Source of the DNA: Macrostomum lignano
Lineage: Eukaryota
Direction of reading: 5' to 3'
Length of the DNA: 64,000 bases
Assembly: GCA_002269645.1 (NCBI GenBank)
Contig: NIVC01000260.1
Coordinates: 679,857-743,856 of the forward strand
A program made the translations under genes and the position numbers. How positions within the stretch are numbered: the stretch's first letter is position 1; each line of letters begins with the position of its first letter. The notes under the pieces were generated by a model. The model saw nothing but the letters and a program-made list of their open reading frames with translations. It was not told where the DNA came from and did not search any database. Positions 2,228 through 43,663 of the stretch are shown one piece after another.

Positions 2228-2947
2228 TCAGTGCACGCTGAACTTGACCCAGTCGGCGCTCGTCTCGATCTCCGCCTCCACCTGAGCGTCGGTGAACAGC
2301 AGCAGGCGGCAGGCTCTCAGCTTGCTGTTGTACAGCATGTGTCTGCAGCTGGCCGCACGCATGCCGGCTGCAGTGCACCTCATGGCGCTGCTCACATTCG
2401 GCACATCGCTGAAGCAGTACACAGAGTGGTGCAGCTCTCGCTTGAAGTCAGCGGCCTTCCAAACTCCGGTAGCAGGGTGCCGGGCTGTCTCACTCACAAA
2501 CTCGCACACGAAGCCGAGAACAGAGTGGCACCTTTTGTCACCAAGAGTGACATCCCTCCTGATGCGCAGGCAGTTTTCTCCTGTTGAGCCAGTAGGATTG
2601 TATGATAAGTACATGGAGTTGTCATCCGGGAGCAGGCCGTTGCCGTTGACCCTCTGCCAGCCGGCCCTGCTGCCGCCTCTCTCATCGGCCAGGTCGCTCA
2701 CTCCGATCCACAGGTCGCAGCCGCAGTTGGCACTGGAAATATTTCGACCGAGTAGCAGCTTGATGGAGTCGTGCGAGTTGACGAGCTCGCCTCCGATAGA
2801 TTTGCACTGCTCATTTGCTGAGCACCAGGTGCGGCTCTGAACTGTGCTCACGAATAGGCACTTGCCGGCCTCGAGGTGGAACGGAGCGGGGCACGGCTGA
2901 GCTGAAGCCCAGAGCAGTTGAGCACTTAAAATCAGAAGCACTTGCAT
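2228..2947 (-). CDS. Secreted C-type lectin domain + C-terminal degenerate PAN/apple-like domain protein (copy A, 239 aa, intronless)
   Basis: Signal peptide; long-form CTLD cysteine spacing (CPAPF..C..W..A..C); WIGVSD motif; C..C-x7-C core; C-terminal YC..C..SCRHxLYN..CRLL module; four close paralogues in the window. Confidence 0.9.
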   Translation of the reverse strand: MQVLLILSAQLLWASAQPCPAPFHLEAGKCLFVSTVQSRTWCSANEQCKSIGGELVNSHDSIKLLLGRNISSANCGCDLWIGVSDLADERGGSRAGWQRVNGNGLLPDDNSMYLSYNPTGSTGENCLRIRRDVTLGDKRCHSVLGFVCEFVSETARHPATGVWKAADFKRELHHSVYCFSDVPNVSSAMRCTAAGMRAASCRHMLYNSKLRACRLLLFTDAQVEAEIETSADWVKFSVH

Positions 2948-3670
2948 TATATTGTCGCTAAATGTTGAGCACAGACAAAGAGCACGCAGTTACCAAAAAA
3001 ACTCTTCCATCGTAGACAGTCGGGAATTTACGAGTATCTGATTTGCGACCAGTCCGTCCGCGTTGCTATGGCATAAAAGTTTTGTTACATCAGCCTTTTA
3101 AAAGCCACTTACAGGTGAGTAAGCAGAAGCCAGCGAACAAATAAATTCCTACGCAAATATCGATGCTTGCAAAACAAGTAAAGACGCTCAAAGCGCTTTT
3201 CTTCCTTTTTATTTACCTTTCTGTTGTTGCTAAAGCTCTCAGTGCATTTGTCATGAAGAGAATGCGATTCTGCAGTACTCCGTGAGCTGTCTAGCAGTCC
3301 TAAAGAGTTGATCATTTTCTGTTGATTTTTATATGTATGAAAAAACTGAAACTTAAATACCCAGTCGACGAGTTTCCAATAGTCTGGCTGGTCTGGATGT
3401 CTAGTGTCTACTGTTTTTTTTTTGTTTAAGCTCGCCATTGACAGCCCTTGGTTTCTACAGTTTAGCAATGGTTCACCAGCACTTTTTTGCGTAATCCCTG
3501 AGCAGATGACCCCTAATCTCCGAGCACTTCTGCAGTCGTCTCTAAGCAGTTTTCACCGATCCAACTGAGACCAAAACAACTCCAAAGTTATATGGCATAT
3601 TTTTCAAAAAATTAAAACCATTTCAATTGTTTCCAACTTTGTAATTTAAGTTTGCTTTACCGTCTTCTTA

Positions 3671-3920
3671 GGTTGTGCGAGTTATACTAGTGGTTAGAGC
3701 GTCGGACTCAACAACTTGAAGGTCGAGGGTTCGATTCCCGACTCCACTGGAACAATTTGCGTCCTTGAGCAAGACACTTAACTCTGCATTGCTTCATTTC
3801 ACCCATTAGCTGGGGTTATTGAGGGTGTGTGTGGCGACTCGACATATTCTATTCCAGTTTAAACAACTTTAAATTTCTCCATCCTGCGTCGTAACTCTGG
3901 CACGACTCCCTCCAGTACGC
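3671..3920 (+). mobile_element. tRNA-derived SINE with a CORE/V/Deu-like central box
   Basis: A-box-like TAGTGGTTAGAGCG and B-box GGGTTCGATTCCC, followed by TCCTTGAGCAAGACACTTAAC (resembles the conserved central box of CORE/V/Deu SINEs); runs into a (GACA)n tract. Confidence 0.65.
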
Positions 3921-4000
<80 letters not shown>

Positions 4001-4049
4001 CACAGACAGACAGATAGACAGACAGACAGACATACTGAAGGACAGACAC

Positions 4050-4100
<51 letters not shown>

Positions 4101-4101
4101 G
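3921..4101 (+). repeat. (GACA)n microsatellite
   Basis: Direct reading; one short interruption near 4030. Confidence 0.97.
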
Positions 4102-7495: not shown

Positions 7496-8096
7496 AGTTA
7501 GGGCATTATTATATTTAAGTTTTATACAAAGACTATTTTACACAAATTAACAAAATTAGCAAGTTTACAAATATTCAGACAGCATTCTTACGTCGCAGAA
7601 CAAAATGACAGGAGTGTCCTCCGTCACACAGGCAGCTCAAAACTTCGTCTGCAGTAGAAGCGATGGAACCGAGTCCCCATTCACAAACACTGCACCAATA
7701 CTGCTCAAGTTTGCATGCTCTCAAGTTACGCGGATTTGTGTCCATGTTACCAGTCGTTGAATGCTTTGTTGCTTACGATTGCCAACAAGTAAAGACATGG
7801 TGACACCACTAGGAAACAAATTTTTGTGCGTGTGACCAGACGATCCTCGGGTATAGTACTGTAAATGTACAAAGGCATTTGCATTAAACTTGCATTGCAT
7901 TGTGAATTGTGAATTTTTAGTCCATGAAGACATTTGCAGGGCACCTGGCGTGAAATCAGGTGATATTTTTCGACATGACATTCTAGATGATTATTCCATC
8001 TTAGCTACTGTTAATAGTCACTGAATTTATAATTTAGTCCTCAGGCTCTAAACAAAGGAGAGCCAATAGGATATGGTGAAAAGAATTGCTAGCAGT

Positions 8097-8803
8097 ATGA
8101 ATCAGAGCTTTGTGCCCTCTGGTATTGCTGCTTCTGGGCTGCTTGAGCAGTTGCGAGTTGCTGTTGGTGCGGACCCAGTCCTGCCCCAGCCCATTCAGCA
8201 TCGAGTTTGGCCAATGCCGTGTTCTTGAGCACAGAGAATCGGCGATGCGCATCGATCGGTGGCGAGCTGCTCAACTCGCACAGCTAGCTGGCTCTGCTAC
8301 TGCCGACACTCGCCTGCGACTGCTGGGTCTGGCTCGGAGTGTCCGACCTGGCCGATGAGCGAAACACGAGCAGGTCTGACTGGCAGCTGGCCAGTTTCAA
8401 CGGCATCCTGCCGCTGGACAATTCGCTGTGGGCATCGGCTGAGCCTGATAACCAAGACGGCAACCAGGACTGCGTTGCTGTGTTGTCTTCTTCAAGTTCT
8501 GAATCTGGCTGGGTTAGTCTGAGAGTTTGTCGATAAAGCAACACTGAGGTCTCCGTCAGGCCAACTGTGGCAGCGGACTCCGTTCAAGCGCAGCGTAACC
8601 CCAGCTCCGAGTTCTGCCACGCTGACCTGCTGCAGGTGAAGAACGCAATGCACTGCGTGACAGCTGGCATGCGTGCGGCCAGCTGCAGACACGTGCTGTA
8701 CAACAGCAAGCTGAGAGCCTGCCGCCTGCTGCTGTTCACCGACGCTCAGGTGGAGGCGGATATCGAGACGAGCGCCGACTGGGTCAAGTTCGGCTTGCAC
8801 TGA
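8097..8803 (+). pseudogene. C-type lectin-PAN pseudogene (copy B)
   Basis: Homologous to copy E. It has a ~25-bp frameshifting deletion in the TWCSAN region, an in-frame TAG, a TAA after VCR and loss of the FACEF segment. The 3' third is nearly identical to copy E. It has EPD at the sugar-binding motif position. Confidence 0.88.
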
Positions 8804-10189
8804 GCAGTCATGAGTCACTTCTGAGTACTGATGGCTGATCTCAGCAATGAAGGACACAGGAAATTTTAAAAAGCAAATTGATAAACAATTGATATCTGAG
8901 TTAGTAGTGGAGCAGTGCCTGATCTTCTTAATTTATTGTTTGTAGGCTAAGGTCAATCATTTACGAGTGCTTAAGAGCTGAGACAGTATCCGTTGGCGAA
9001 GCCTGTTTTTAAAGGTCTGAATCTTCGTTGGAGTAAAACGCATTTTTCATTGCTTTTTGTAAGGCCGTTTCAGTCATCTGGACGCTCTGATATGCCAGCG
9101 GCCCAGGCTCGATTCACGAATTGGAAGAATTGCAAAGCTTAGCAAGCATCTGTTCATCAGCGATTCAATATTTATCCGACTCTTGCTTCAATATCCACCA
9201 AGCAATGCAGTTGTCTTTCCAGTGTAAATACCCGCGAATAGCCGACGAACATGTCTGGGTCTGGTCTACGCTCGTAGTGCTTGTCAGGACTGGCCTTTCC
9301 GGAACAAAATGGTCAAAGCTTTGATGTTCCACTCTAAATGTTAGCAGCTCACAGAGAAAAGGAAGAACAATCTGAATCTTTTAAAATACCAAAAAAGAAG
9401 AGAAAATCATAGCAGTTTTTGCTGCTCTACTTTGGCTGCTCAAACAACGCAGCGATGCCTCAGTCAGGAATGTCCTTTCTATGATTTGACCATGAAAGAT
9501 GTGATTCGAGAGAAAAGGGCCAAATGTATTTTGAATGAAGCTGCTACATCTCGGACTGTTTTTTATACCTTCGATTCACTGCCGAGCAGCATTTTGCCAA
9601 GCAATACTTACCAAGAGGAGTTCAACTCCCACTTTGCACTGCTACAGCCCGAATACCTATGCCTGTGTGAGACAGCTTAATGGTTAGAGTTGGGCTGACA
9701 TTTTTCCTATTCAAAAAGTGGCTAATACATTTTGCTCCCCTCATGAACAGTCAGATATAAGCAATACGAGCTATACTTATTGCTCCTCGATTGCAGCTGC
9801 TCCTTATTTGAACAAGGCTAAGCATTGCAGATGAGAAACGCTAGCAGCTAGCTTCTTGAGACGAGAAATGCTTGTGTAAAACTAACAATCAACAGGTGCG
9901 ATAGTTTAGTGTGGTTATTGGAGGCTGAAGAGAGAGTTTGAAATACTTTGCAAAAAGAAAAATAGCAAACTAGACTTTCTCCAATTGCAGCCGCTGGTGA
10001 TATCATGCAAGAATAAAGGAGGATGAAGCATAATTAAACAAACAATGTGTTGAATGCGATCGCACATAAGGTTTGAGATATATCGCACATAAGTACTGAT
10101 TATTTTACTCATTGATTCAAATGATACGATTTCCCGCAGTTCACTTGACACTAATAGATTTAGACAGCAATTCGTAACACTAATAAGCA

Positions 10190-11620
10190 CTGATTGACAC
10201 CCCCATTCCGCTGGCCCCTGGCGACCAAGGACTTCAATCAAAGCGATGTCGCTCAGGGGAACCCGACGGCCTCGCCTGCAGCGCGGTTCTCCTCACCGGC
10301 GATGAGGAAGATCTCAGCTCGTCCCGTGTCCCCGAGGTACCGGGCGAGCAACGGGATGCTTTCGGGCCTGCAAACGTCGGGGAGAACCAGGGTTTCGGGC
10401 CGAGGTGAGTGAGCAGATAAAGTTTCATTGCCTGAGCGGCAGAAAGGGCACCAGCCTCAGGTACCTGGCCTTGAAGGAAGCGGTGGCGAGAGAAGCAGCC
10501 ATGCCCTGAGAGGGAAATGCAAACTGCTCTGAGGTCTCTGCGGTCAAGCCTAAGGAGGGCTCTGCGCAGGAGGGGAGAGGGACATCCCGGCAGCACGGGA
10601 TTGCCTGCAATTCCGGGTGTCGTGCCACCTGCGGAGAGGCTCGGAATCAGCCCAGCGCTTAACGCGAGAGTTGATCACCGAGGCGGGGATGGGGTCCCTG
10701 GGCCCCGGCCCCAGCAACGCGCCGGCGGAGCCAGCCTTGGCCAGCAAGTCAGCGCGCTCGTTGCCGAGGAAACCAGCGTGACCCGGGATCCATCTGAGCC
10801 CCATCTGATTGCCAAGCGCCAGCCCATTGAACTGGGCATTGTAGTCCAGGACAGATTTTGGGTTGGTGGTGCTGCGGCAGAGGGCCCGAAGGGCTGCTTG
10901 GCTGTCAGAGTGAAAAATCTTTGATGTTCCGCTGAGCGCTGAGCTGCCTTCGGCGCAGCTCTGCCGAACAGGAGCTGGCTCAGGAGAAGGGCGGCTGGGA
11001 TCGACTCCATGAGAATGTTGAGCCCGCCACACTCCTCGAGAGTCTTAAGGCAGAGGTCAGAGTGCGGGATAAGGGACCGTTTCTTAAAGACCCGCACCTT
11101 TTTTAACGCCTTCCCGACATACAGAAGGCGCCGGGTGCTCTTCACCCGCTTCTTCTTTGATATAAATATCCAGAGGAGGGGCACAGAGGAAGGCATTCAT
11201 GCACTCAAAAGGAGCAGAGGGTGGAGCGCCCATAGTCATTTGGCAGGCTCTGCCCTGGATTTTGTAGAGAGCGTCGAGGTTACTCTTGACCCTCAGGCGG
11301 CTAGCCCAACTTGAGAATGAGATCACGAAAGGTCGCTGCAAAGCAACTCATGACCATGTTCCAGAGACCGGGGTATGAACCCCGCCCTGAGGGCCCCTTT
11401 TCTGGACAGGCGAAGTTTGACAGTGCGGTTCCGGGCCATGAACATCATCCACAAGGTGAGGGTGAGTGGCTTTGGAATCCAGTGCTCTGCCAAAGGCCTC
11501 AAAGATGACATTCAGATAAGAAACTTCTCTCGGTCGCGGATAAGAACCGAGCCATCAGGTCTCTTCACCACAGAGAGTTTAGAAAACGCGGTCCGTTCGT
11601 GAGAGCCTTTACCACGCAGG
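10190..11620 (-). mobile_element. Degenerate 3' part of an RNase H-containing non-LTR retrotransposon (LOA/R1/I group)
   Basis: RNase H motifs HSDSQAALRAL and WIPGHAGFLGNERADLLAKAG, then GPGPRDPIP; C-terminal GHGCFSRH..C..C zinc-knuckle region; RT-thumb remnant LYKIQGRAC..GAPPSAP; several frameshifts. Confidence 0.88.
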
Positions 11621-12556: not shown

Positions 12557-13862
12557 TTAACAGTAGGAATACCAAGCCATTATTCCGCCCGTCGAACTAC
12601 CAAGGGGGGGGGGGAATTTCCCCTAAACAGAGCAACGCAGGCACACGAAATTCAAGAACACGGGCTAACTTTTTGTTGCGCACCTTCTCAAACATGAATC
12701 AAGTCGCCAGCCCTCCGGACCGTCGAGATATTCGACGATTCTGCCAGAAGGTCGGATTTTTCCCATAAGTGCTAGTGTATTCAGTACACCCCTGTGCGCC
12801 AATTAGCACTGCGCCTCAGTGCAGCCTTGCCCAGTCTCCAAATTTCATCAGCACGTCGACCACATGTGTCTGCATCAGTTCTGACTTTGTTGGTCACTGG
12901 CCTGCACCCAGGTGGAGCTTCTGGACCCTCAACAGCTGTGGCACCAGGTGACTATGGACACCCTGATGCGGATTTCTCTACGAGCTAGTTTCGCCGATCA
13001 AGCCTCGACAGTGGGCAAGAATCAACCGTCAGACATTCTCAGCTAGTCTCTCGAGCATTTCGTCATCACCTTGATGCCGTCGGCACCTTCAACAAATGAC
13101 ACCAGATGACTATGGGCACCCTGATGCTGATTTCTCTAGTTTCGCCGATCAAGCCTCGACAGTGGGCAAGCCTCAACTGCTGGACATCCTCAGCTAGTCT
13201 CTCGAGCATTCCGTCATCACCCCGACGCCATCGGCACCTTCAACAGCTGTGGAGCTTCAGAAATGTTAAGCGCATTATGAAAAATCACGCTCAGGTGTCC
13301 TTACTCACCTGGTGTCACCTGTTGAAGGTGCCGACGGCGTCGGGGTGATGGCTGAATGCTTAACTGACTAGCTGAGGATGTCCAGCAGTTAATTTTTGCC
13401 CACTGTCAAGGCTTGATCGGCGAAACTAGCTCGTAGAGAAATCCGCATCAGGGTGTCCATAGTCACCTGGTGCCACAGCTGTTGAGGGTCCAGAAGCTCC
13501 ACCTGGGTGCAGGCCAGTGACCAACGAAGTCAGAACTGATGCAGACACATGTGGTCGACGTGCTGATGAAATTTGGAGACTGGGCAAGGCTGCACTGAGG
13601 CGCAGTGCTAATTGGCGCACAGGGGTGTACTGAATACACTGGCGCTTATGGGAAAAATCCGACCTTCTGGCAGAATCGTCGAATATCTCGACGGTCCGGA
13701 GGGCTGGTGACTTGATTCTTGTTTGAGAAGGTGCGCAACAAAAAGTTAGCCCGTGTTCTTGAATTTCGTGTGCCTGCGTTGCTCCGTTCCGGCGCAGCAA
13801 AAAAAATTGTCAGGGGGGGGGAATTTCCCCACCCCCTTGGTAGTTCTACGAGCTACTGTTAA
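12557..13862. mobile_element. Foldback (head-to-head inverted) pair of the 151-bp-repeat element family
   Basis: About 12620-13030 is the near-perfect reverse complement of about 13390-13790; the junction at ~13252 falls on GAGCTTC microhomology; both outer ends read TTAACAGTAG...GAACTACCAAGGGGG inward. Confidence 0.85.
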
Positions 13863-13944
13863 TGTGCTCTAAGGTGATTCAGTCGGTTCTATATATGAAG
13901 ATAATATTCCAGAGACAATTATTTTAGACTCAAAGCATCGCCAA

Positions 13945-14661
13945 ATGCTTGTGCTGCTGCTGCTGCTGCTGAGCTGCCAGCTGCTGCAGTCGCAGGCCCT
14001 GCCGTGTCCCGCACCGTTCACCATGCAGGCCGGTCTGTGCCTGTTCGTGAGCACAGCTCACAGCCACAGCTGGTGCTCAGCCAATCGGCAGTGCGCATCG
14101 ATCGGAGGCGAGCTCGTTAACTCGCACAGCTCCATCCTGACACTGAATCGCAGCGGCATCAGCTCATCCTGCAGCTGCCAGCTGTGGATCGGACTGAGCG
14201 ACCTGGCCGATGAGAGAGGCAACAAGAGAGCCGGCTGGCAGAGGGTCAACGGAAACGGCTTCGCTGACCCTCCCTTTGATCTGTTTTACGAATACGAGCC
14301 GTCAGGATATGACGAAAACTGCATTCGAATGGACCATCTGGGGCTGCTCAGAGACGCCAACTGCAGCCATAACTATGGATTCGCTTGCGAGTACAAGGAC
14401 CCCTCTGCTTACCGGAAGCTTGCCAATTGGAAGAAGGTGTCGTTCAAGAGAGCCACCTACAACACCGAGTACTGCTTCACCGATGTGCCGAATGTGAGCA
14501 GCGCCATGAGGTGCATTGCAGCCGCTATGAGTGACGCCAGCTGCAGACACGTGCTGTACAACAGCAAGCTGAGAGCCTGCCGCCTGCTGCTGTTCACCGA
14601 CGCTCAGGTGGAGGCGGAGATCGAGACGAGCGCCGACTGGGTCAAGTTCCGACTGCTCTGA
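13945..14661 (+). CDS. Secreted C-type lectin-PAN protein (copy C, 238 aa, intronless)
   Basis: Signal peptide with poly-Leu; CTLD cysteines; WIGLSD; EPS at the EPN position; conserved C-terminal module. Confidence 0.9.
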   Translation: MLVLLLLLLSCQLLQSQALPCPAPFTMQAGLCLFVSTAHSHSWCSANRQCASIGGELVNSHSSILTLNRSGISSSCSCQLWIGLSDLADERGNKRAGWQRVNGNGFADPPFDLFYEYEPSGYDENCIRMDHLGLLRDANCSHNYGFACEYKDPSAYRKLANWKKVSFKRATYNTEYCFTDVPNVSSAMRCIAAAMSDASCRHVLYNSKLRACRLLLFTDAQVEAEIETSADWVKFRLL

Positions 14662-15299
14662 TTCGAATGGAAAGAATAACACAGATTTTAAGAAAATGAA
14701 AGAAAAGTTACGCTAAAGTTTCTAACTCTGTTGTCGCAATTTTTATCCAGAAGGAATTCGCTTTGAATGGAATCTGAGCTTTATAAACTATTTCTGCAAA
14801 ACTTGAGAAACAATTGAGTAAATTTCGAACATCTAAATACACAATGGCATTCCAAAAATGCATATTTTTTAGCGTTGATAAATTCATTTTTGCTAGGAAC
14901 AATAATCATAGCCTAGAAATAAAATTTGCAAGTTGCCCAGACTTGCTTTGCTAGTAGTTACGATCTGGTTTATAGATTTTTTCGAATCCATAATGCTACG
15001 GTAACGAGCTGCAGTTTAGCAGGTAAGGGGGCACAGCTCAGGGAGAAAGCGGTGAGGCAAACCAGCCAACTCCAAGTAAAACGCATCGCATCTTAAAAGC
15101 ATCGCATAAAAATTGTTAAAACGATTATATATAGATATACATGTAGCAAAGATTTAGCAATGAAGAGGCAAAAACAGTCGAGTGAGGCGCAGCAACGAAA
15201 GGCGCCCCCAGATCGGTCGACGTTCTTCCATCGTTTATTGTTGCAACTAATAAACAGTAGAACTAGCAAGAGAGACTGCGCCGGCACACACACACCTAA

Positions 15300-15650
15300 A
15301 GCAAGAATCAAGTCGCAAACCCATGCACCGTCGAGATATTCAACGATTCTGCCAGAAGGTCGGGTTTCTCCCATAGGCGCCAGTGTATTCAGTACACCCC
15401 TGTGCGCCAATCAGTACTGCGTGGCCTCAGTGCAGCCTTGCCAAGCCTCCAAATTTTATCAGCACGTTGACCATATAAGCTACGTGCCTGCATCAGCTCT
15501 GGCTTCGTTGGTCGGAGCTTCTGGACCTTCAGCAGGTGGCACCAGGTGACTATGGACACCCTGTTGCGAATTTCTCTGGTTTCGCTGATCAAGCCACTGG
15601 GCAAAAATCAACTGCTGGACATCCTCAGCCAGTCTCTCAAGAATTCAGTA
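15300..15650 (+). mobile_element. Diverged partial copy of the 151-bp-repeat element family
   Basis: Aligns by eye to 12695-13030 and 24915-25240 (e.g. GTGTATTCAGTACACCCCTGTGCGCCAAT; GGCACCAGGTGACTATGGACACCCTG). Confidence 0.85.
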
Positions 15651-15849
15651 GTCATCCAAGCGTTATAATATTGTTGTTGTTAAACGGGGTGCCATGCGGC
15701 GTGGACCTACCGATCTACCGATGATACGAGAGCGTAATAGGGGTAGGTCAGAAGCGTATGCTAGCTGGGGCCATCTCAACATTGAATTCCTATGGGTTGC
15801 CTCACAAAGATGGCAGACCCATACGGCGGGGTTCAAAGGCGAAAATGTT

Positions 15850-19551: not shown

Positions 19552-20271
19552 ATGCATGCGCTGCTGCTGCTGCTGCTGCTGAGCTGCCAGCTGCTACCGA
19601 CGCAGGCCCTGCCGTGTCCCGCACCGTTCACCATGCAGGCCGGTCTGCGCCTGTTCGTGAGCACAGCTCACAGCCACAGCTGGTGCTCAGCCAATCGGCA
19701 GTGCGCATCGATCGGAGGCGAGCTCGTTAACTCGCACAGCTCCATCCTGGCGCTGAGTAGCAGCGGCATCAGCTCATCCTGCAGTTGCCACCTGTGGATC
19801 GGACTCAGCCAGCTGGCAGACTACAGAGGCAAGAGTACGGCTGGATGGCAGAGGGTCAATGGCAACGGCATCTTTCCGGATGACAGCACTCTGCTCAGAG
19901 GGCTGAGTGACAACTATGAAGAATTCTGTCTAAGAATAAAACCTGATGGAAAGATCGCTACAAGAGAATGCTGGAAAAATTATGGATTCATCTGCGAGTT
20001 CGTGAACAAAACTGGACCCCAAGCTGATCGAACCTGGACGGCCGCCCGCTTTGACCCAGCGAATTACAACAACTCCTACTATTGCTTCGAAGATGCAAAA
20101 AACATTGATAGCGTCATCGAGTGTACAGCTGCTGGCATGTGTGCGGCCAGCTGCAGACACGTGCTGTACAACAGCAAGCTGAGAGCCTGCCGCCTGCTGC
20201 TGTTCACCGACGCTCAGATGGAGGCGGAGATCGAGACGAACGCCGACTGGGTCAAGTTCCGCCTGGTCTGA
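19552..20271 (+). CDS. Secreted C-type lectin-PAN protein (copy D, 239 aa, intronless)
   Basis: The ATG at 19552 matches the start of copy C; the first ~65 codons are near-identical to C; the core is divergent (LSDN at the EPN position); the 3' block is conserved. Confidence 0.88.
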   Translation: MHALLLLLLLSCQLLPTQALPCPAPFTMQAGLRLFVSTAHSHSWCSANRQCASIGGELVNSHSSILALSSSGISSSCSCHLWIGLSQLADYRGKSTAGWQRVNGNGIFPDDSTLLRGLSDNYEEFCLRIKPDGKIATRECWKNYGFICEFVNKTGPQADRTWTAARFDPANYNNSYYCFEDAKNIDSVIECTAAGMCAASCRHVLYNSKLRACRLLLFTDAQMEAEIETNADWVKFRLV

Positions 20272-20545
20272 TTCGAAGGGAACAAACACACTACAGAGCA
20301 GATCGTACAGGTTCAATTGCACCTGTTTGTCCCTTATTATTTAAATAACTAAGATTAAATATCAAATTTATCACGAACTGTTGTCTTAATGAGCAAAAAG
20401 TACTAGCAAGTTAAATAAACAATGGCATTCCAAAAAGCAGGTTTTATTTCAGTCTTCCAGTATTTCATTTTTTACGCACAGCAGATTATAGGCTCAGATA
20501 CTAACTACATAGATACTACCAGATTCGTTTTTTTATGCGCACGAC

Positions 20546-28498: not shown

Positions 28499-28561
<63 letters not shown>

Positions 28562-28821: not shown

Positions 28822-29226
28822 TCACGGGTCAAGCGGCAGACTGTCCGGTTCGATGCTGATAACGCTAGCAAACGGCTCGCCAACCGGAATCCGTTTAGTA
28901 AAATAATATTTCTCAGAGAAGCCCTCAGTGAGCTCTGGATAGTAGCGATAGTTGACCATCATGCCGCAGGACTGGCTCAGCCCGTTCGGACTCTGATCGG
29001 CCTGCCAGCACAGGCGGTACATCACCGCACCGTTGCGGAGGTGAAAATTAGCGATAGGATCCAATGCGTGGCCCCGGTGCTTCAGCGCGAATAGGTAGCG
29101 AGCGCACAGCTTCATCAGGGGCTGCTTCAGCTCCGAGACTAGCACTGGGGAGGTGATCCACTCTTGCGACTCCAGCGTCATTGACAGCTTGGTGTACAGG
29201 TCTTTGTTGTTGTCTACGTCGAATAG
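28822..29226 (-). CDS. MLYCD: Malonyl-CoA decarboxylase, last exon
   Basis: LMKLCARYL..KHRGHALDPIANFHLRNGA..WQAD.S..G..QSCGMMVNYRY matches the MCD catalytic C-terminus; acceptor CTCAG| at 29227. Confidence 0.95.
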   Translation of the reverse strand, partial: LFDVDNNKDLYTKLSMTLESQEWITSPVLVSELKQPLMKLCARYLFALKHRGHALDPIANFHLRNGAVMYRLCWQADQSPNGLSQSCGMMVNYRYYPELTEGFSEKYYFTKRIPVGEPFASVISIEPDSLPLDP

Positions 29227-29254
29227 CTGAGGTTTACAGGGGTGGGTAGACATG

Positions 29255-29835
29255 GGTTATCTAGGTAGATAGACGGATTATCCAGGTAGATAGACATGGA
29301 CTATCCAGGTGGATGGACGTGGATTACTTAGGTAGATAGACGGATTATCCAGGTAGATAGACATGGATTATCTAGGTGGATGGACGTGGATTATTCAGGT
29401 AGATACATGTGGATTATCTAGATAAATAGATGTGGCTAATCGAAGCAGATAGACGTGATTATCCAGGTGAATAGACGTGGATTATCCAGGTAGATAGACG
29501 TGGATTATCCATGTGAATAGACGTGGATTATCCAGGTAGATAGACGTGGATTATCCAGGTAAATAGACGTGAATTATCCATGTGAATAGACGTGGATTAT
29601 CCAGGTAGATAGACGTGGATTATCCAGGTAAATAGACGTGAATTATCCATGTGAATAGACGTGGATTATCCAGGTAGATAGACGTGGATTATCCAGGTAA
29701 ATAGACGTGAATTATCCATGTGAATAGACGTGGATTATCCAGGTAGATAGACGTGGATTATCCAGGTAGATAGACGTGAATTATCCATGTGAATAGACGT
29801 GGATTATCCAGGTAGATAGACGTGGATTATCCGGG
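29255..29835 (+). repeat. Intronic 23-bp minisatellite (GTGGATTATCCAGGTAGATAGAC)
   Basis: Direct reading; fills most of the MLYCD last intron. Confidence 0.93.
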
Positions 29836-29884
29836 GGAGCAGAAGTAGATAATCCAAAGATGACGAGAACGGAAAGCCGCCAAC

Positions 29885-30169
29885 CTGCATCATCTTGACG
29901 TGAGTCTCGTCAGAGAACAACGGCAGCAGGTCGGAGCTCTCAGGTCGAACATCGTCGAGAATTCTGGCGAACACCTCGTGCTGCAGGTGGCGATTGATCT
30001 GGCCAAACAGCCAGTTGTTGAAGCCGGGGATGGGGGACAGAGAGGAGAAGTGCTGCAGCTTGGGGTACTCGGCCTGCAGACGGTGCATGACCCGGCGGAC
30101 AATGTTGCTGCCGAGGTCGATGCCGCTCAAGCCGTCAATGGGCCGGCTGATTGAGTAGAAGTTTGCCAC
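29885..30169 (-). CDS. MLYCD: Malonyl-CoA decarboxylase exon (95 codons)
   Basis: VANFYSIS..GLSGIDLG..IVRRV..LQAEYPKLQHFSSLSPIPGF matches the MCD signature; phase 0 splice sites at both ends. Confidence 0.95.
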
Positions 30170-30204
30170 CTGCGAGAGTAGGGCATGGATGGGCAGAGTA
30201 TTGT

Positions 30205-31750
30205 CACTGATCTGTTCCCTCAAAATCATTCATCTTGTTTCTTCAAAATCATCCATCTGGTTCCCTCAAAATCATTCATCTGGTTCCCTCAAAATCATCC
30301 ATCTGGTTCCCTCAAAATCATCCATCTTGTTGCCTCAAAATCATCCATCTTGTTCCCTTAAAATCATCCATCTTGTTCCCTCAAAATCATCCATCTTGTT
30401 CCCTCAAAATCATCCATCTGTTGCCTCAAAATCATCCATCTGTTGCCTCAAAATCATCCATCTTGTTACCTCAAAATCATCCATCTGTTGCCTCAAAATC
30501 ATCCATCTTGTTCCCTTAAAATCATCCATCTTGTTCCCTCAAAATCATCCATCTTGTTCCCTCAAAATCATCCATCTGTTGCCTCAAAATCATCCATCTG
30601 TTGCCTCAAAATCATCCATCTTGTTACCTCAAAATCATCCATCTTGTTGCCTCAAAATCATCCATCTTGTTCCCTAAAAATCATCCATCTTGTTCCCTCA
30701 AAATCATCCATCTTGTTCCCTCAAAATCATCCATCTGTTGCCTCAAAATCATCCATCTTGTTCCCTAAAAATCATCCATCTTGTTCCCTCAAAATCATCC
30801 ATCTTGTTCCCTCAAAATCATCCATCTGTTGCCTCAAAATCATCCATCTTGTTCCCTTAAAATCATCCATCTTGTTCCCTCAAAATCATCCATCTTGTTC
30901 CCTCAAAATCATCCATCTGTTGCCTCAAAATCATCCATCTGTTGCCTCAAAATCATCCATCTTGTTACCTCAAAATCATCCATCTTGTTCCCTCAAAATC
31001 ATCCATCTTGTTCCCTAAAAATCATCCATCTTGTTCCTTCAAAATCACCCATCTTGTTCCTTCAAAATCATCCATCTTGTTCCCTCAAAATCACCCATCT
31101 TGTTCCCTCAAAATCATCCATCTTGTTCCCTCAAAATCATCCATCTTGTTCCCTCAAAATCATCCATCTTGTAGCCTCAAAATCATCCATCTTGTTCCCT
31201 CAAAATCATCAATCTTGTTCCCTAAAAATCATCCATCTTGTTCCCTCAAAATCATCCATCTTGTTCCCTCAAAATCATCCATCTTGTTCCTTCAAAATCA
31301 CCCATCTTGTTCCTTCAAAATCATCCATCTTGTTCCCTCAAAATCACCCATCTTGTTCCCTCAAAATCATCCATCTTGTTCCCTCAAAATCATCCATCTT
31401 GTTCCCTCAAAATCATCCATCTTATTCCCTCAAAATCATCCATCTTGTTGCCTCAAAATCATCCATCTTGTTGCCTCAAAATCATCCATCTTGTTGCCTC
31501 AAAATCATCCATCTTGTTCCCTCAAAATCATCTATCTTGTTCCCTCAAAATCACCCATCTTGTTCCCTCAAAATCATCCATCTTGTTCCCTAAAAATCAT
31601 CCATCTTATTCCCTCAAAATCATCCATCTTGTTGCCTCAAAATCATCCATCTTGTTGCCTCAAAATCATCCATCTTGTTGCCTCAAAATCATCCATCTTG
31701 TTCCCTCAAAATCATCTATCTTGTTCCCTCAAAATCATCCATCTTGTTCC
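30205..31750 (+). repeat. Intronic 23-bp satellite (CCCTCAAAATCATCCATCTTGTT), left arm
   Basis: Direct reading; the many ORFs here are repeat artefacts. Confidence 0.97.
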
Positions 31751-32614
31751 TGTAGAGTGTTCTACCTCCCGTTAAAAAAGGAAAAAAGAAGATAATCGTA
31801 TAATACTACTATAAGTAAGTAAGTACACGCATGTGCGCCTAAGCTTTGAATGAATCACGCTACCAGAAAAAGATGTTACCAGAATAATACGCCATGAGCC
31901 ATTTTCCCCTTTTAGCGCAACACGTGAATTGTCATGATACTATTTTGGATCAAAAACTTGTCTATAAATACAAGCGATCTGAAGCGGTACCGGAGCCATT
32001 CTCCCCACGGAAGAGGAGCGCTCCGAAGAGGAAGCCTTAGGAGGACTTCCTGATCTACCAAGTCAATCGAGACTCGGTCGAGTTGTTGCGGTAAGCCTTC
32101 CTTATTTGCGCCCGTTGTGTTAGAGACGTCTCGCTCAAGTCTATTGAGACTTGAGTCTAATTGAGTCTGTTGAGACTCTTGAGTCTGTTTAGACTCCATT
32201 GGTTGCAGTCTCCAGAAGGACTGCCCCTGATAGATCTTAGAGGACTATCAGTGGTTTCCGGAGCTATACCTAGAGTGCATAGAGGCACTGCTAGAAGAAG
32301 GAGGCTTAATTTAGACCGCAGTTTGGCGCAGGGTACCCATTGTTGCTACGAGGCCTCTGATTGGTCCTGACGGAAGATACCGGCCGGAAGAACTTATCGG
32401 AAGTACAAGAGGAACCAGGACCAGAGCAACTGAAGAATCAAGGCGCCTGATCTACGAGATCTACTGACAAGTTCCTAGCGAGAACTACTCAAGAAATTCA
32501 AATCCGGATTAAAGGTAATTGAATACCTTCGTTTGACTTACTGGGTTGCCTAGCTGTTGAGCTAGAAGTGATTGTTCCTTGATTATCGAAAGTCGGGTAA
32601 TAAGGAACACATCA
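31751..32614. mobile_element. Solo LTR (864 bp) inserted in the satellite
   Basis: Begins TGTAG and ends CATCA; flanked by a 5-bp target-site duplication GTTCC (31746-31750 and 32615-32619); TATAAATA near 31962. Confidence 0.85.
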
Positions 32615-34575
32615 GTTCCCTCAAAATCATCTATCTTGTTCCCTCAAAATCATCCATCTTGTTCCCTCAAAATCATCCATCTTGTTCCCTCAAAATCATC
32701 CATCTGTTGCCTCAAAATCATCCATCTGTTGCCTCAAAATCATCCATCTTGTTCCCTCAAAATCATCCATCTTGTTGCCTCAAAATCATCCATCTTGTTC
32801 CCTCAAAATCATCCATCTTGTTCCCAAAAATCATCCATCTTGTTGCCTCAAAATCATCCATCTTGTTCCCTCAAAATCATCCATCTTGTTCCCTCAAAAT
32901 CACCCATCTTGTTCCCTCAAAATCATCCATCTTGTTCCCTCAAAATCACCCATCTTGTTCCCTAAAAATCATCCATCTTGTTCCCTCAAAATCATCTATC
33001 TTGTTACCTCAAAATCATCCATCTTGTTGCCTCAAAATCATCCATCTTGTTCCCTCAAAATCATCCATCTTGTTCCCTCAAAATCATCCATCTTGTTCCC
33101 TCAAAATCATCCATCTTGTTGCCTCAAAATCATCCATCTTGTTCCCTCAAAATCATCCATCTGTTGCCTCAAAATCATCCATCTGTTGCCTCAAAATCAT
33201 CCATCTGTTCCCTCAAAATCATCCATCTGTTGCCTCAAAATCATCCATCTTGTTACCTCAAAATCATCCATCTTGTTCCCTCAAAATCATCCATCTTGTT
33301 CCCTAAAAATCATCCATCTTGTTCCCTCAAAATCATCCATCTTGTTCCCTAAAAATCATCCATCTTGTTGCCTCAAAATCATCCATCTTGTTCCCTCAAA
33401 ATCATCTATCTTGTTCCCTCAAAATCATCCATCTTGTTCCCTCAAAATCATCCATCTTGTTCCCTAAAAATCATCCATCTTGTTCCCTAAAAATCATCCA
33501 TCTTATTCCCTCAAAATCATCCATCTTATTCCCTCAAAATCATCCATCTTATTCCCTCAAAATCATCCATCATTTCCTCAAAATCATCCATCTTATTCCC
33601 TCGAAATCATCCATCTTGTTGCCTCAAAATCATCCATCTTGTTGCCTCAAAATCATCCATCTTGTTCCCTCAAAATCATCTATCTTGTTCCCTCAAAATC
33701 ATCCATCTTGTTCCCTCAAAATCATCCATCTTGTTCCCTAAAAATCATCCATCTTGTTGCCTCAAAATCATCCATCTTGTTCCCTCAAAATCATCTATCT
33801 TGTTCCCTCAAAATCATCCATCTTGTTCCCTAAAAATCATCCATCTTGTTGCCTCAAAATCATCCATCTTGTTCCCTCAAAATCATCTATCTTGTTCCCT
33901 CAAAATCATCCATCTTGTTCCCTCAAAATCATCCATCTTGTTCCCTAAAAATCATCCATCTTGTTGCCTCAAAATCATCCATCTTGTTCCCTCAAAATCA
34001 TCTATCTTGTTCCCTCAAAATCATCCATCTTGTTCCCTAAAAATCATCCATCTTGTTGCCTCAAAATCATCCATCTTGTTCCCTCAAAATCATCTATCTT
34101 GTTCCCTCAAAATCATCCATCTTGTTCCCTCAAAATCATCCATCTTGTTCCCTCAAAATCATCCATCTTGTTCCCTCAAAATCATCCATCTTGTTCCCTC
34201 AAAATCATCCATCTTGTTCCCTCAAAATCATCCATCTTGTTCCCTCAAAATCATCCATCTTGTTCCCTCAAAATCATCCATCTTGTTCCCTCAAAATCAT
34301 CCATCTTGTTCCCTCAAAATCATCCATCTTGTAGCCTCAAAATCATCCATCTTGTTCCCTCAAAATCATCCATCTTGTTACCTCAAAATCATCCATCTTG
34401 TAGCCTCAAAATCATCCATCTTGTTCCCTCAAAATCATCCATCTTGTTCCCTCAAAATCATCCATCTTGTTCCCTCAAAATCATCCATCTTATTCCCTCA
34501 AAATCATCCATCTTGTTCCCTCAAAATCATCCATCTTATTCCCTCAAAATCATCCATCTGTTGCCTCAAAATCAC
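32615..34575 (+). repeat. Intronic 23-bp satellite, right arm
   Basis: Direct reading. Confidence 0.97.
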
Positions 34576-34593
34576 TTTCCAGAAAGTGCAAAC

Positions 34594-34821
34594 CTTAACC
34601 CTGGCGGGATCCTCCACACTATCAGGCATGTGCTCAAACAGTGCTGGCACAATTTTCTCCATGGTGTCGGCCACATTCTCCAGCAGTGCGGCGTGAAGAA
34701 TGACCAGCGGTTCGCCGGGCAGGCAGGGATGCGTGAACACGAAGCAGCGTTTGTAGGCGCCAACACGACGTTTGAGATCCTGCCAGCCAAGGATCGGGTG
34801 GACAGCCTCGCTAGCGGCCAC
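34594..34821 (-). CDS. MLYCD: Malonyl-CoA decarboxylase exon (76 codons)
   Basis: SEAVHPILGWQDLKRRVGAYKRCFVFTHPCLPGEPLVILHAAL matches MCD EAVH..W.D.KRR.G..RRC..F.H...P.EPL. Confidence 0.95.
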
Positions 34822-34934
34822 CTGACAGCGAGGTTAGGGTAGGGAATTCAATCGTGCTTAGTAAGTGATTATCTACTAATAAGTAGCAAGGAAGGAATCT
34901 GAAGCGAATCCTTCAAAAATCATTTATTTTCACA

Positions 34935-35120
34935 TCTCACTCCCCAATGTCTCTCATCTCACTTCCCAAAAATCTCAAATCTCATTTTCTGAAAATCTCC
35001 CATCTCACTCGCCAAAAATCTCTCTTATCTCACTCCTCAAAAATCTTCCATCTCACTCTCCAAAAATCTCCCATCTCACTCTCCAAAAATCTCCCATCTT
35101 CAACATTAATTTTAGCGCCA
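34935..35120 (+). repeat. Intronic degenerate ~23-bp repeat (ATCTCACTC..CAAAAATCTCCC)
   Basis: Direct reading; same family as 35625-36195. Confidence 0.75.
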
Positions 35121-35228
35121 AAGTTTAAATTATAAAAAACCTACTGTACATTTTGCGATGCCTACTAAAATAGCCTACCGATATGTAGTGCATAGAAGAA
35201 AATTCTAGAAGAACATAGAAAAATTCAC

Positions 35229-35519
35229 CTTCTCCAACAGCCTACTCGGCGACTCCCAGGTAGCCCGTTGCAGGTGAAACAGACCCGAGCTGAACCACAC
35301 AGACAGCAGCTGTTTGAGCTCGTGGTCGATCACTGGGACAACAGCTGGAGTAGCTTCTACAGTAGATTTGCCAGTGAGTTTGCTCAGATCAGTGCGCATA
35401 TTAACCATGAACTTCACTCCACCTTGGGCTTTGCCGAGCACGCGAAACAGCCCGGCAAACTGCGGCTGGGTGATGTGGCGCAGATTCTGCAGGCGTTGAA
35501 TGCTCTCCACAGGATTTGA
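35229..35519 (-). CDS. MLYCD: Malonyl-CoA decarboxylase exon (97 codons)
   Basis: PQFAGLF..GGVKFMVNMRTDL...LKQLLSVWFSSGLFHLQRATWESPSRLLEK matches the MCD N-terminal helical domain. Confidence 0.95.
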
Positions 35520-35624
35520 CTGCGGGCAAGATGAAAATACGAGTATAATTGGCTGAGATTTAAGTCGATGCGTCATCATACACGCTATAAACTCAGTAAA
35601 TAACCCTTACTCTGTCCGCTTCAC

Positions 35625-40679: not shown

Positions 40680-41240
40680 GTAGGACGGTGAGGTGGGGCG
40701 GAGGAAGAATATTTATGCTTGACTTGGCGGTTGCGGATTTTGAACTCGGGGTTTCTTCGAAACCGGTCGTCGTTGCGTTCGCACGAATTGAAGCCGGAAG
40801 ATCGCGCAGATGAATCACAACGGAAGTTTGCCTCCTGTTTTACTCCGACTGCCGGGGTCCTCAAATTCCGGGGGGATCGGTAGTCTCAGTCGTAGGCGGG
40901 CGGTCTTCGTTAGGCGCGAGCGTTCAGTGCGGGTTCTCAGACACCGTGAATTTATGTACCTCATATGCTTATTTCGTTACTAATAGTAGAGTAGCGCTGC
41001 CACCACCGTAATTTGCGTATTACGGAACGTTGGAGTCTTAGAGCTTGCTTCGAGATGAGACGGGGTTATTTTACGCCCCACGGGCAAATGACTCAAGATA
41101 AGCTATGACTTTTAATTAATTGAACAACGAAATTAAGTTGGCTCGCCTAATTTATTAAAAGGCCGATTAAATTAGAGTTAGCTAATATTATTATAGTTCA
41201 ACGAGTACCACGAGAGATGAGACGGTGGTGCCGCGAGGGC
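40680..41240 (-). promoter_or_regulatory. CpG-rich island-like patch at the presumed MLYCD 5' end
   Basis: Dense CpG here contrasts with the nearly CpG-free 37-40.3 kb block. Confidence 0.4.
40724..40964 (-). CDS. MLYCD: Candidate MLYCD first exon (Arg-rich presequence; needs a 1-nt correction in the C6 run near 40870)
   Basis: ATG at 40964 gives MRYINSRCLRTRTERSRLTKTARLRLRLP. Removing one C joins it to ..RRNPEFKIRNRQ with a weak phase-0 donor (CAA|GTCAAG) compatible with the next exon. It lies in a CpG-rich patch. Confidence 0.35.
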
Positions 41241-41760
41241 GACTACAAATTAGCAACTATTGTAATAAATGAATTCCCTGGTAGTACGCACAGGTAATGA
41301 ATCCAATAATAAGAGTTAAACAAAAGGAAAGGAGGAGAAAAGGAGAAGGAGAAAGAGAAGGGTCCATTTAGCAGCCCTCGCATCATATTATTTATAATAT
41401 TAAACAGAACATTTTGTGGCATCAAATGAACAGAAAAAGGAGAAAAAATAATTAAAATGGACCTTAAAGTCATAGTTATGGGCATACGAAAATTAACACT
41501 GGGGAGATGCAGGGCAAAACTAACAACGAACAGAAAAGGGGCTCAATGGCCAGAACCGGGGAGCAGAGGGTCAGAACCAGGGAGCGGGAGATGACGGAAG
41601 GGTGACGTCAGGGCAGCACCTTAAGGTGGACGGAGGAGGGCCAAACCCAGGACAACGGCAAAAAATAACGACCAGAAAACGGGATCCAAAATAAATTTCA
41701 AACAGTTAGTGTGAGGCTCAACCTACCACAACGGGAAACCTCGTTTCTTAGAAAAAATTA

Positions 41761-41925
41761 GAAGGCAGGTTTTCACGAAAAATACACTACACGGAGATAG
41801 GAAGTTTTCATTTTTTCAGCACAAAAATTGTTATTGCTTTTGATAGGAGGCAAATCCAGTGTTCATCTTTTGATAAGTTGTGCCTTTCTTATTGCTCTAT
41901 CGATATTCATGGAGCTTTTCGTTAA
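41761..41925 (+). repeat. Second copy of the 5738-5970 dispersed repeat
   Basis: Direct alignment by eye. Confidence 0.7.
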
Positions 41926-42904
41926 GAAAATTAGGATTCTATGTGAATTTTTATTCTACGTACATTTGCACGTGTCTTGTGCCTAAAAACCATTGAAATG
42001 GCACAGCGCGGCTCTTTGGTTTTATGAGTCTATTTTATCATTCTTAGCTGACTGTGTAACAAATATTTGTAACAGAGATGATAAGATAGATTCATAAAAA
42101 CCAAAGATTCGAGTTGTGTCATGCATTTTTATGAATTTTAGATACAGGAAATGTAGTTTATATAGTAATAAACTCACTGGTACCCCAGTCGCTCTTGCAG
42201 AAAATCCCTCGTGTCTCACAAGCTTTAAGATGAGGAAGAATATATTCTATACGCATTTGGTGTCAATGCAAATGTCTCACATTGTTTTGTGGCAGACGAA
42301 GCCACGCACAGATGATAAAGGCCGGTTCCTCGGGTTAGACATGCATTCTCTGCTACTGCTGCAGCAATTCATCAGAGCAATCGGGTTTAACTGTAGTTAG
42401 CCACAGCGAATTCGTACCAGGAAAAAATTATGTGTACCTGTGTACCGCCTCAGTGCTTGCATTTGCTATTTTGAAACACTACAGTGCTTTCTATTCTGAA
42501 GAAACAGTGTAAACCATTTGCTGCATTAGCGCGGTCGTAATTCCTACATCTATTGTATTGCATTGCATCCGTAGTAACGGAAAAACCCTGTGGAAATTCT
42601 GACGACTTTCCGTATTTCCGCTTCAGCGCGCTTGATACCGATCTTCCTGCTTGGCTGTAGAAAAACTTCTATTGAATGGAGTACTGATGGAAATAAATTA
42701 TAGCATTCGTGGGGAAACTCTTAAGCGATGACGACGACTTGAGGTATGGATCAATCGACTCAGTGAACCTTATCCTTGGCTGGGTTTTTCAATAAATAGT
42801 GCTTATACTGGGTGGAGCCCGAACGCGAAACAAAATTGCAGTGCCAAATATCGTGGTCGCAAAAATTTAAATATTTTTCTAAGTTAAAGAAGCAAAATGG
42901 CAGT

Positions 42905-43663
42905 ATGCAAAATAAAATCATTATAATTATGCTAACCCTGCTGCACAGCAGGCAGCTGACGCCAGTGCAGGCCCAGCTGACCGCGTGCCCCGCTCCGTTC
43001 AGCCTCGAGGCCGGCAAATGCGTGTTCGTGAGCACAGCTCAGAGCTCCACCTGGTGCTCAGCGAATCGGCACTGCGCATCGATCGGAGGCGAGCTGCTCA
43101 ACTCGCACAGCTCGCTGCAGTTGCTGGGCAGCATGCCGAGTCTCAACTGCAGCTGCAACATCTGGCTCGGAGTGTCCGACCTGGCTGAGGAGAGAGGCAC
43201 GAGCAGGTCGGGCTGGCAGCTGGTGAAAGGCAAGGGCATTCTGCCTCTGAATGACTCCCTGTGGCGAACAGGCGATCCAAACAACAGCGGAGGCAACCAG
43301 GACTGCATCGGGCAGTACAATGACGCGGTCGGGAAGCTGTCTGACAACGTCTGCTCGGAACTGTGCGGCTTCGCCTGCGAGTTCGTTGGGGCAGCTCAGC
43401 CTCGCTCTGCCTCTGGCCAACTGTGGCTGCGGACTCCGTTCAAGCGCACCAGCTACAACCCGAGCTCCGAGTACTGCCACGCTGACCTGCTGCAGGTGAA
43501 GAATGCAATGCACTGCGTGACAGCTGGCATGCGTGCGGCCAGCTGCAGACACGTGCTGTACAACAGCAAGCTGAGAGCCTGCCGCCTGCTGCTGTTCACC
43601 GACGCTCAGGTGGACGAGGAGATCGAGACGAGCGCCGACTGGGTCAAGTTCCGCGTGCACTGA
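42905..43663 (+). CDS. Secreted C-type lectin-PAN protein (copy E, ~252 aa, intronless)
   Basis: Signal-like N-terminus from the ATG at 42905; WLGVSD; GDPNN..NQDC (DPN at the EPN position); conserved C-terminal module. Confidence 0.9.
   Translation: MQNKIIIIMLTLLHSRQLTPVQAQLTACPAPFSLEAGKCVFVSTAQSSTWCSANRHCASIGGELLNSHSSLQLLGSMPSLNCSCNIWLGVSDLAEERGTSRSGWQLVKGKGILPLNDSLWRTGDPNNSGGNQDCIGQYNDAVGKLSDNVCSELCGFACEFVGAAQPRSASGQLWLRTPFKRTSYNPSSEYCHADLLQVKNAMHCVTAGMRAASCRHVLYNSKLRACRLLLFTDAQVDEEIETSADWVKFRVH

Follow-up and report, generated by a model that had tools for sequence, protein, structure and literature searches.

Five clustered copies of a C-type lectin-like gene in the flatworm Macrostomum lignano share a 114-nucleotide (nt) coding segment near their 3' ends that agrees almost base for base, silent positions included, while the second half of the lectin domain is at or near saturation at silent sites. 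The window analyzed here is a stretch of 64,000 nt from contig NIVC01000260.1 (assembly GCA_002269645.1, positions 679,857 to 743,856 of the forward strand), and all positions below are counted from its first letter. The original prediction, made from this sequence by eye of a model, had placed five copies of a gene for a C-type lectin-like domain (CTLD) joined to a PAN domain at the positions listed in Table 1. All five (A to E) were recovered there, as four intact open reading frames (ORFs) and one pseudogene, copy B. From the pattern described below, we consider it quite probable that interlocus, and probably GC-biased, gene conversion among old paralogs has homogenized the segment, acting on top of strong protein constraint.

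The 114-nt block in genes, pseudogene and orphan fragment

The block runs from GCCAGCTGCAGACAC to GGGTCAAGTTC in all five copies, and its 3' end lies 12 nt before the stop codon. Across the gene copies it holds 6 differences in 570 nt, every one of them confined to a single copy (Table 1), and a 51-nt core within it is exact in five of five copies, where chance would give 0 matches. The shared 3' segment had been put at about 115 nt and was said to extend to the pseudogene, and both statements held up.

We estimated synonymous (dS) and non-synonymous (dN) divergence by the Nei-Gojobori method (NG86) on a codon alignment of the six intact pairs formed by A, C, D and E. Over the 37 codons of the block, dS was 0 in six of six pairs (0 of approximately 24 synonymous sites). 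The same pairs gave a dS of 0.19–0.51 in the N-terminal half of the CTLD, 0.88 to saturated in its C-terminal half (the core), and 0.67–2.7 in the linker and the N-terminal half of the PAN-like domain (PAN N-half). The original prediction depended on silent divergence being lower in the block than in the core, and these values bear it out. Among degenerate codon columns with an invariant amino acid, 31 were identical and 0 variable in the block, compared with 36 identical and 24 variable in the rest of the gene (Fisher p = 8e-6). Outside the block, identical residues shared their codon in only 62–82% of cases, and given that rate the probability of the codon identity seen in the block is 1e-3 to 1e-7 per pair. 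Because codon sharing elsewhere in these genes is so incomplete, we judge codon bias alone insufficient to explain the block. At the protein level, the block corresponds to the core of the PAN/apple fold, that is, the C-terminal half of the PAN-like domain; it is conserved across the whole Macrostomum-type family and is the most protein-constrained segment family-wide.

A further partial copy of the block lies approximately 1 kb downstream of copy A. This orphan fragment, sharp-edged and surrounded by non-coding DNA, matches the 3'-terminal two-thirds of the block. It contains no ORF that has a start codon, is preceded by TATATATATAG and is followed directly by TAG TGA. No other lectin similarity was found around the fragment, and a tblastn search of the window (E ≤ 1) for further degenerate copies turned up only this one. 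Its 3' edge (...GTCAAGT) falls within 2 nt of the block 3' edge in the genes. Since both the pseudogene B and the non-coding orphan carry block sequence, the homogenization is independent of coding function.

The block is also distinct in base composition. The G+C content of third codon positions (GC3) is 0.92 in the block, 0.76–0.85 in the partly homogenized N-terminal half of the CTLD, and 0.47–0.78 in the core. Six of the seven private substitutions in the block copies, orphan included, are GC>AT, which is the expectation for new mutations on a recently homogenized GC-rich tract. The rise of GC3 with homogenization fits GC-biased gene conversion, without proving it.

The intact copies A, C, D and E are uninterrupted ORFs of 238–252 codons, each with its own start and stop codons and a hydrophobic, signal-peptide-like N-terminus. 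In copy D the reading frame stays open back to an ATG at 19486, although homology begins only at 19552. Pseudogene B carries two deletions (24 nt and 4 nt), a +1 insertion, an in-frame TAG and a TGA in place of a conserved Cys codon. Copy E is separated from copies A–D by approximately 22 kb, which include a malonyl-CoA decarboxylase gene. Because untranslated regions (UTRs) and intergenic DNA are unrelated among the copies, dispersed repeats aside, the genes are best read as old paralogs with patchy later exchange and not as recent duplicates. A recent segmental duplication was ruled out, the flanks of the copies having no homology.

Each copy also has a T-rich stretch ending in AG, 4–25 nt 5' of its ATG, at about 2948-2975 (minus strand), 8080-8096, 13915-13944, 19520-19551 and 42860-42904; examples are TTTTAG in C, TTTTTAG in D and ATTTAG in A. 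These stretches resemble splice or trans-splice acceptors, and the lectin genes may therefore be intronless only in their coding part.

Mosaic tracts and the diverged lectin core

Mosaicism extends beyond the block (Table 1). In sliding-window comparisons, C–D identity was 84–100% over the 5' half and then fell sharply to approximately 50%. The pair A–C reached 91% identity over the ~60 nt that precede the block, and B–E 89–98% over about 140 nt. Pseudogene B differs from E by 21–41% in its 5' two-thirds, whereas the last ~245 nt are only 3–6% diverged. Permutation of the polymorphic columns gave runs of concordant sites with p ≤ 5e-4 for A–C and for C–D, and p = 0.006 for B–E.

Relationships among the copies change with the segment examined. 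The nearest neighbor of C was D in 1000 of 1000 bootstraps for the 5' half and A in 993 of 1000 for the PAN N-half, where A and C were mutual nearest neighbors in 993–998 of 1000. Copy C is therefore chimeric in ancestry, D-like in its 5' half and A-like in the PAN N-half. The B–E pairing holds along the whole gene, and the final 12 nt after the block group the copies as (A,B,E) versus (C,D). Congruent trees along the gene had been named as an outcome that would count against the original prediction; what we obtained was neighbors that switch between segments.

The second half of the CTLD had been called barely alignable, an impression matched by nucleotide p-distances of 0.40–0.65. Its dN/dS was 0.29–1.03 where dS could be estimated, the other pairs being saturated in dS and low in power. 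Because silent sites are at or near saturation there too, the core seems to have diverged long ago and not to be under active diversification. The proposed diversification of the recognition loops thus finds nothing measurable in its favor, as dN/dS did not exceed 1.03. No transfer of the variable core was seen among the five copies, all core p-distances being at least 0.40, and a scan of the larger ORFs in the window revealed neither a deaminase nor a recombinase domain. Nothing in the cluster has the character of a donor cassette: there are four complete ORFs, and the sole fragment derives from the constant block and not from the variable part. The suggested analogy with variable/constant receptor families can be kept only loosely, since each copy is a whole gene in its own right rather than a cassette that supplies a single expressed gene. 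Positive selection should not be concluded from the seeming "hypervariability" of the loops, and selection scans call for the same caution.

Relatives, mechanism and competing explanations

A search of 5.8 billion protein clusters yielded 2 relatives of the window lectins, and a profile search with the C-terminal domain against 1.84 billion representatives yielded 12. All relatives with a species name are M. lignano entries of UniRef; the others come from metagenome contigs. Going by these searches, the CTLD-PAN family is tiny and specific to one lineage, the Macrostomum-type flatworms. A metagenome scan with the block DNA pattern found nothing, and one with a degenerate block protein pattern gave 27 pattern matches, of which 0 were confirmed. 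In the literature we found no published description of the family or of gene conversion in Macrostomum. The published Mlig-tuf2 also contains a CLECT domain, but its architecture is IgV + CLECT, unlike that of the window lectins.

One relative, here called X (contig L001, from another genome), is E-like, with a canonical EPN motif and LFD at the WND position. Its block differs from that of every window copy at 12–14 of 114 nt, compared with 1–4 among the window copies themselves. These changes comprise 5 synonymous and 7 non-synonymous ones, with a block dS of 0.24 between X and the window. A pair of distant family members from one metagenome (P0013 and P0015, contigs L003 and L002) served as a control. 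In this pair, block dS was 1.45, compared with 1.18 in the rest of the gene, and dN was 0.14 in the block and 0.51 in the rest. Identical residues of the block shared their codon at a rate of 65% (17/26) in the control pair and 87% against X. Because the control pair combines a block dS of 1.45 with a dN of 0.14, the synonymous sites of the block appear free to change where homogenization is absent, even though the protein is constrained. Since X has synonymous changes in the block and the distant pair a high block dS, the synonymous identity in the window is best taken as local homogenization and not as a sequence-level functional element.

The block peptide also recurs in UniRef M. lignano proteins that are unlike the window copies elsewhere: P0001 matches C at 37 of 37 residues, and P0011 matches E at 34 of 37. 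Amino-acid differences between E and P0011 are evenly spread along the protein. Those between C and P0001 are concentrated in the core and linker, a concentration that, in this protein-only comparison, may reflect either selection or conversion of the flanks. Several M. lignano UniRef entries of the family (P0011, P0014, P0016 and P0017) are merged with neighbor genes as symporter-lectin, guanylate cyclase-lectin and globin-lectin products, which suggests gene-model fusion errors around small single-ORF lectin genes.

What gene conversion should leave behind was found in the window: dS far lower in the tract, relationships that depend on the segment, greater likeness within the genome than to another genome, and independence from coding status. 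The original prediction of a repeatedly homogenized constant module stands for the 3' block, with its dS of 0, its presence in pseudogene and orphan, its switching neighbors and its genome specificity. It does not stand for a single constant module, as the 5' half is partly homogenized as well.

In outline, an old cluster of lineage-specific genes, each encoding a secreted CTLD followed by a divergent PAN/apple domain, would have been overwritten repeatedly by short non-reciprocal transfers in those segments similar enough to pair. The most recent and most complete overwriting would have struck the 114 nt that encode the C-terminal half of the PAN-like domain, and a less recent one the 5' half of the CTLD. 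Longer tracts would be confined to single pairs, namely the 5' half in C–D and the sequence upstream of the block in A–C and B–E. Because protein constraint holds the PAN core similar, this core would stay a substrate for conversion and could for that reason be the part homogenized last. The loop half of the CTLD may have diverged past the reach of conversion, or conversions there may have been selected against. The block would be present in pseudogene and orphan because neither conversion nor ectopic repair distinguishes coding from non-coding DNA. Conversion as the mechanism, its direction, its timing and the reason the core escapes are what we infer from the pattern.

Several points weigh against this account. 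Conversion itself was not observed. The nucleotide comparisons outside the window consist of one outgroup contig and one control pair, the M. lignano UniRef paralogs being compared as proteins; X is the sole outgroup sequence, and its orthology to the window copies is uncertain. The window and X have a block dS of 0.24, below the 0.54–0.58 of neighboring E–X segments, which may leave room for extra synonymous constraint, GC-biased conversion or a codon-bias equilibrium. Finally, five of five genes have one and the same 3' block edge, which simple stochastic conversion tracts would not obviously be expected to give. The shared edge may point to a defined site at which conversion starts or stops, for instance a recurrent break or termination near ...AAGT/TC, or to a discrete donor.

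Conversion among duplicates has precedents elsewhere. High- and low-divergence regions side by side in duplicates under conversion are an established model (reviewed in PMC3924837), and conversion has been modeled for the tandem HMA4 paralogues (bioRxiv 10.1101/2025.10.29.685298). In mosaic concerted evolution with a "peak of divergence", as in the human red/green opsins, near-zero tracts lie beside strongly diverged ones, with depressed dS in the tract and an apparent age that depends on the segment, as in the window lectins. The window tract is, however, very short (114 nt) and purely coding, lacks homogenized UTRs or flanks, and ends 12 nt short of the stop codon. Divergence here takes in approximately half of the gene rather than a small island and is saturated, and selection for divergence is only putative. 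Pseudogenes act as gene-conversion partners in major histocompatibility complex (MHC), resistance (R) gene and immunoglobulin (Ig) clusters (PMC3924837), and the disabled copy B likewise holds a freshly converted segment and exchanges with functional neighbors. In those clusters, conversion moves variable segments and makes new haplotypes, whereas only conserved segments were seen moving in the window, and pseudogene B gives no sign of being a donor rather than a recipient. For the natural killer cell C-type lectin-like receptors KLRC/NKG2, homogenization is restricted to domains, the ligand-binding ones according to the title of the report (PMC3210942). Both systems are clusters of CTLD paralogs with conversion confined to one part of the gene; the receptors homogenize their ligand-binding domains, whereas the CTLD loops of the window escape and the C-terminal PAN-like half-domain is homogenized. 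On the conversion reading, the locus is a compact and very clean case of segment-restricted concerted evolution, clean but ordinary, that opens no new kind of biology. It also carries a warning for annotation and evolutionary work in Macrostomum, because trees and ages inferred for the CTLD-PAN family depend on the segment used.

The block might instead be fixed by selection on the nucleotides themselves, as a small-RNA target, an mRNA localization or stability element, or an antisense frame, with no recombination needed. We regard this as very unlikely. Such selection would cover identity at synonymous sites, in the pseudogene and in the non-coding orphan, it agrees with the low block dS against X (0.24, compared with ~0.55 in neighboring segments), and long antisense ORFs do run over the block in every copy. 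The synonymous and non-synonymous block changes in X contradict it, as does the control pair with its block dS of 1.45. The block also lacks a stable RNA fold (z = +1.36; 183 of 200 shuffles fold as well), no Rfam match was found when the whole window was scanned, and selection of this kind would not account for the mosaic tracts that pairs of copies share outside it. An RNA-structure element was rejected on the z score and the lack of an Rfam family in the window. Antisense dual coding was rejected too: the antisense ORFs follow from the absence of TTA, CTA and TCA codons in the sense frame, and 8 of the 9 changed X block codons alter the antisense residue. These antisense ORFs, at 2222-2587 (plus strand) and 8492-8857, 14302-14682, 19930-20322 and 43058-43813 (all minus strand), share the codon register of the sense frame.

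There is a slim chance that the shared 3' edge is a defined recombination initiation site and that the block and the semi-constant 5' half act as homology arms which reassort CTLD cores, in the germline or somatically. If so, a flatworm would have a generator of recognition diversity like that of FREP or VSG genes. Should the shared edge mark an initiation site, the locus would also be a tractable place to study the limits of ectopic conversion in a regenerating model flatworm.

Slimmer still is the prospect, raised by analogy with FREP, chicken Ig and VSG genes, of a programmed germline-accelerated or somatic diversification in which the 3' block and 5' half would serve as homology arms for CTLD cores and the pseudogene as a donor. 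The FREP lectins of Biomphalaria are somatically diversified, and VSG and pilS-type cassette systems have conserved 3' anchors. The window lectins have the same conserved-variable-conserved layout, in which recombination might in principle be anchored at the conserved 3' stretch. A chimeric copy C, D-like in its 5' half and A-like in its 3' part, and a pseudogene that joins in the exchange would also suit such a program. All tracts detected here, however, homogenize conserved parts, and no variable core was seen to move. The copies are complete and independently startable, not promoterless cassettes, no deaminase or recombinase turned up in the larger ORFs scanned, and dN/dS was not above 1, with the low power noted above. 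Unlike the known systems, the window lectins have no silent cassettes, no expression site and no visible core transfer, their domain architecture is CTLD + PAN, and they are known here from one assembly.

Purifying selection on the protein combined with extreme codon bias could produce codon identity without any exchange, and the block is indeed the most conserved protein segment of the family, with a GC3 of 0.92. We find this highly improbable: with same-codon rates of 62–82% outside the block, 65% in the block of the control pair and 87% against X, complete identity in four genes is not to be expected, and pseudogene B, the non-coding orphan and the incongruence among segments stay unexplained. 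An assembly or polishing artifact, in which reads of one paralog correct the others over a similar stretch, deserves no greater credence, although errors are common in repeat-rich flatworm assemblies and the family includes several fused UniRef models. Private substitutions occur inside the block in A, B, D and E, identity upstream of it decays gradually and in a pair-specific manner, and M. lignano UniRef proteins that differ elsewhere have the block peptide (P0001 and P0011, above). Least credible of all is a recent whole-gene duplication followed by an adaptive burst in the binding loops, with the block not yet diverged: the most divergent region does cover the loops with the EPN/WND positions, but core dS is at least as high as dN (0.88 to saturated), so that the divergence is old, flanks and UTRs are unalignable, and nearest neighbors vary by segment.

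Domain assignment and the surrounding window

The "CTL-PAN" label of the original prediction proved right at the level of fold. Pfam Lectin_C (PF00059) scored 27.6–33.6 bits in A, C, D and E, above the gathering cut-off of 22.6, with 33.6 bits in copy A, and the closest PDB sequence matches of the intact proteins are the carbohydrate-recognition domains of DC-SIGN. The CTLD Cys framework and the WIGL-type motif (C-PAPF..C, WCS, LWIG(L/V)SDL and C...GF.CE) are kept in every aligned protein whose sequence extends over the position in question. At the EPN position the copies have NPT, EPD, EPS, LSD and DPN, just as predicted, and at the WND position the window copies have LGD, LRD, IAT and LSD. 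The combination of EPN/QPD and WND ligands that marks Ca2+-dependent sugar-binding lectins is absent from the window copies. With these canonical Ca2+/sugar ligands degenerate, sugar binding by the CTLDs is only putative, and the proposed role of the core as the determinant of sugar specificity is unproven.

The C-terminal ~80 residues are predicted to have a PAN/apple fold. Pfam PAN_1 (PF00024) stayed under its gathering score of 21.4, at 13–16.4 bits for the full-length proteins (16.4 in copy A) and 19.5 for the domain alone; among relatives, P0013 scored 21.2 bits and P0020, a distant match of the family profile, 34.8. An AlphaFold2 (AF2) model of the C-terminal 78 amino acids from a 9-sequence alignment had a predicted local distance difference test score (pLDDT) of 82.6 and a predicted template modeling score (pTM) of 0.73. 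The full-length AF2 model, from a 6-sequence alignment, was unusable (pLDDT 33), and we used the C-terminal model alone. Foldseek with this model returned a PDB list made up mostly of PAN/apple modules (HGF NK1, plasminogen, SML-2, MIC4, AMA1, leech antiplatelet protein and Eimeria PAN), with template modeling scores (TMq) of 0.5–0.64 and modest E values of 8e-3 or weaker. Profile matches of the domain in PDB were only 4a5v (TgMIC4) and 2yil (SML-2).

The predicted fold thus resembles the galactose-binding apple domains of the apicomplexan microneme proteins TgMIC4 (4a5v) and SML-2 (2yil) and the N domains of HGF and plasminogen. Apple domains and the window copies have the motif C-x-x-x-(Y/H/F)-N-x5-C-R-(L/M) in common. 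The window copies differ in falling under the Pfam gathering score, and binding by them is only putative. In the window subfamily, the second Cys of a Cx3C pair is replaced, whereas the relatives P0013, P0014 and P0015 retain it.

Table 1. Positions of the lectin copies, block copies, mosaic tracts and other features of the window
Feature	Position	Strand	Description
Copy A	2228..2947	-	intact gene for a secreted CTLD + PAN-like protein of 239 amino acids; EPN position NPT; single ORF
Copy B	8097..8803	+	pseudogene; EPN position EPD
Copy C	13945..14661	+	intact, 238 amino acids; EPN position EPS; single ORF
Copy D	19552..20271	+	intact, 239 amino acids; EPN position LSD; single ORF
Copy E	42905..43663	+	intact, 252 amino acids; EPN position DPN; single ORF
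Block in A	2240-2353	-	1 difference from consensus, private (GTG>ATG)
Block in B	8678-8791	+	1 difference from consensus, private
Block in C	14536-14649	+	0 differences from consensus
Block in D	20146-20259	+	2 differences from consensus, private
Block in E	43538-43651	+	2 differences from consensus, private and adjacent
Orphan block copy	1131..1196	-	66 nt; 65/66 identical to consensus
C–D 5' tract	13934..14262	+	~330 nt; 90.7% identical to D 19541-19872
Extended A–C tract	2228..2420	-	193 nt; 93.8% identical to C 14469-14661; includes PAN N-half
E-like 3' part of pseudogene B	8559..8803	+	p-distance to E 0.064 in PAN N-half, 0.026 in block
RNase H fragment of a retroelement	10550-11032	-	between copies B and C
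Malonyl-CoA decarboxylase gene	28822-35579	-	MCD_N exon 35205-35579; MCD exons 29804-30229 and 28822-29253; between copies D and E
Rhodopsin-family seven-transmembrane (7TM) receptor ORF	45708-46424	-	Pfam 7tm_1, 61 bits; ~2 kb downstream of copy E
1365-codon ORF	57135-61232	+	in-frame 33-nt and 54-nt coding repeats (59048-60361); acidic Ser/Thr/Gln-rich units

The window as a whole has a G+C content of approximately 45% and is satellite-rich. Immediately upstream of copy C lies an inverted repeat of ~510 nt whose arms (12626-13136 and 13279-13788) are 93% identical, and which looks like a foldback or transposon-like element. It is built of a 151-nt unit that also makes a 6-copy tandem array at 25150-26085 and occurs at 15296-15657 and 24827-26100. 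A 23-nt satellite extends over 4.4 kb (30213-34574), apparently within an intron of the malonyl-CoA decarboxylase gene.

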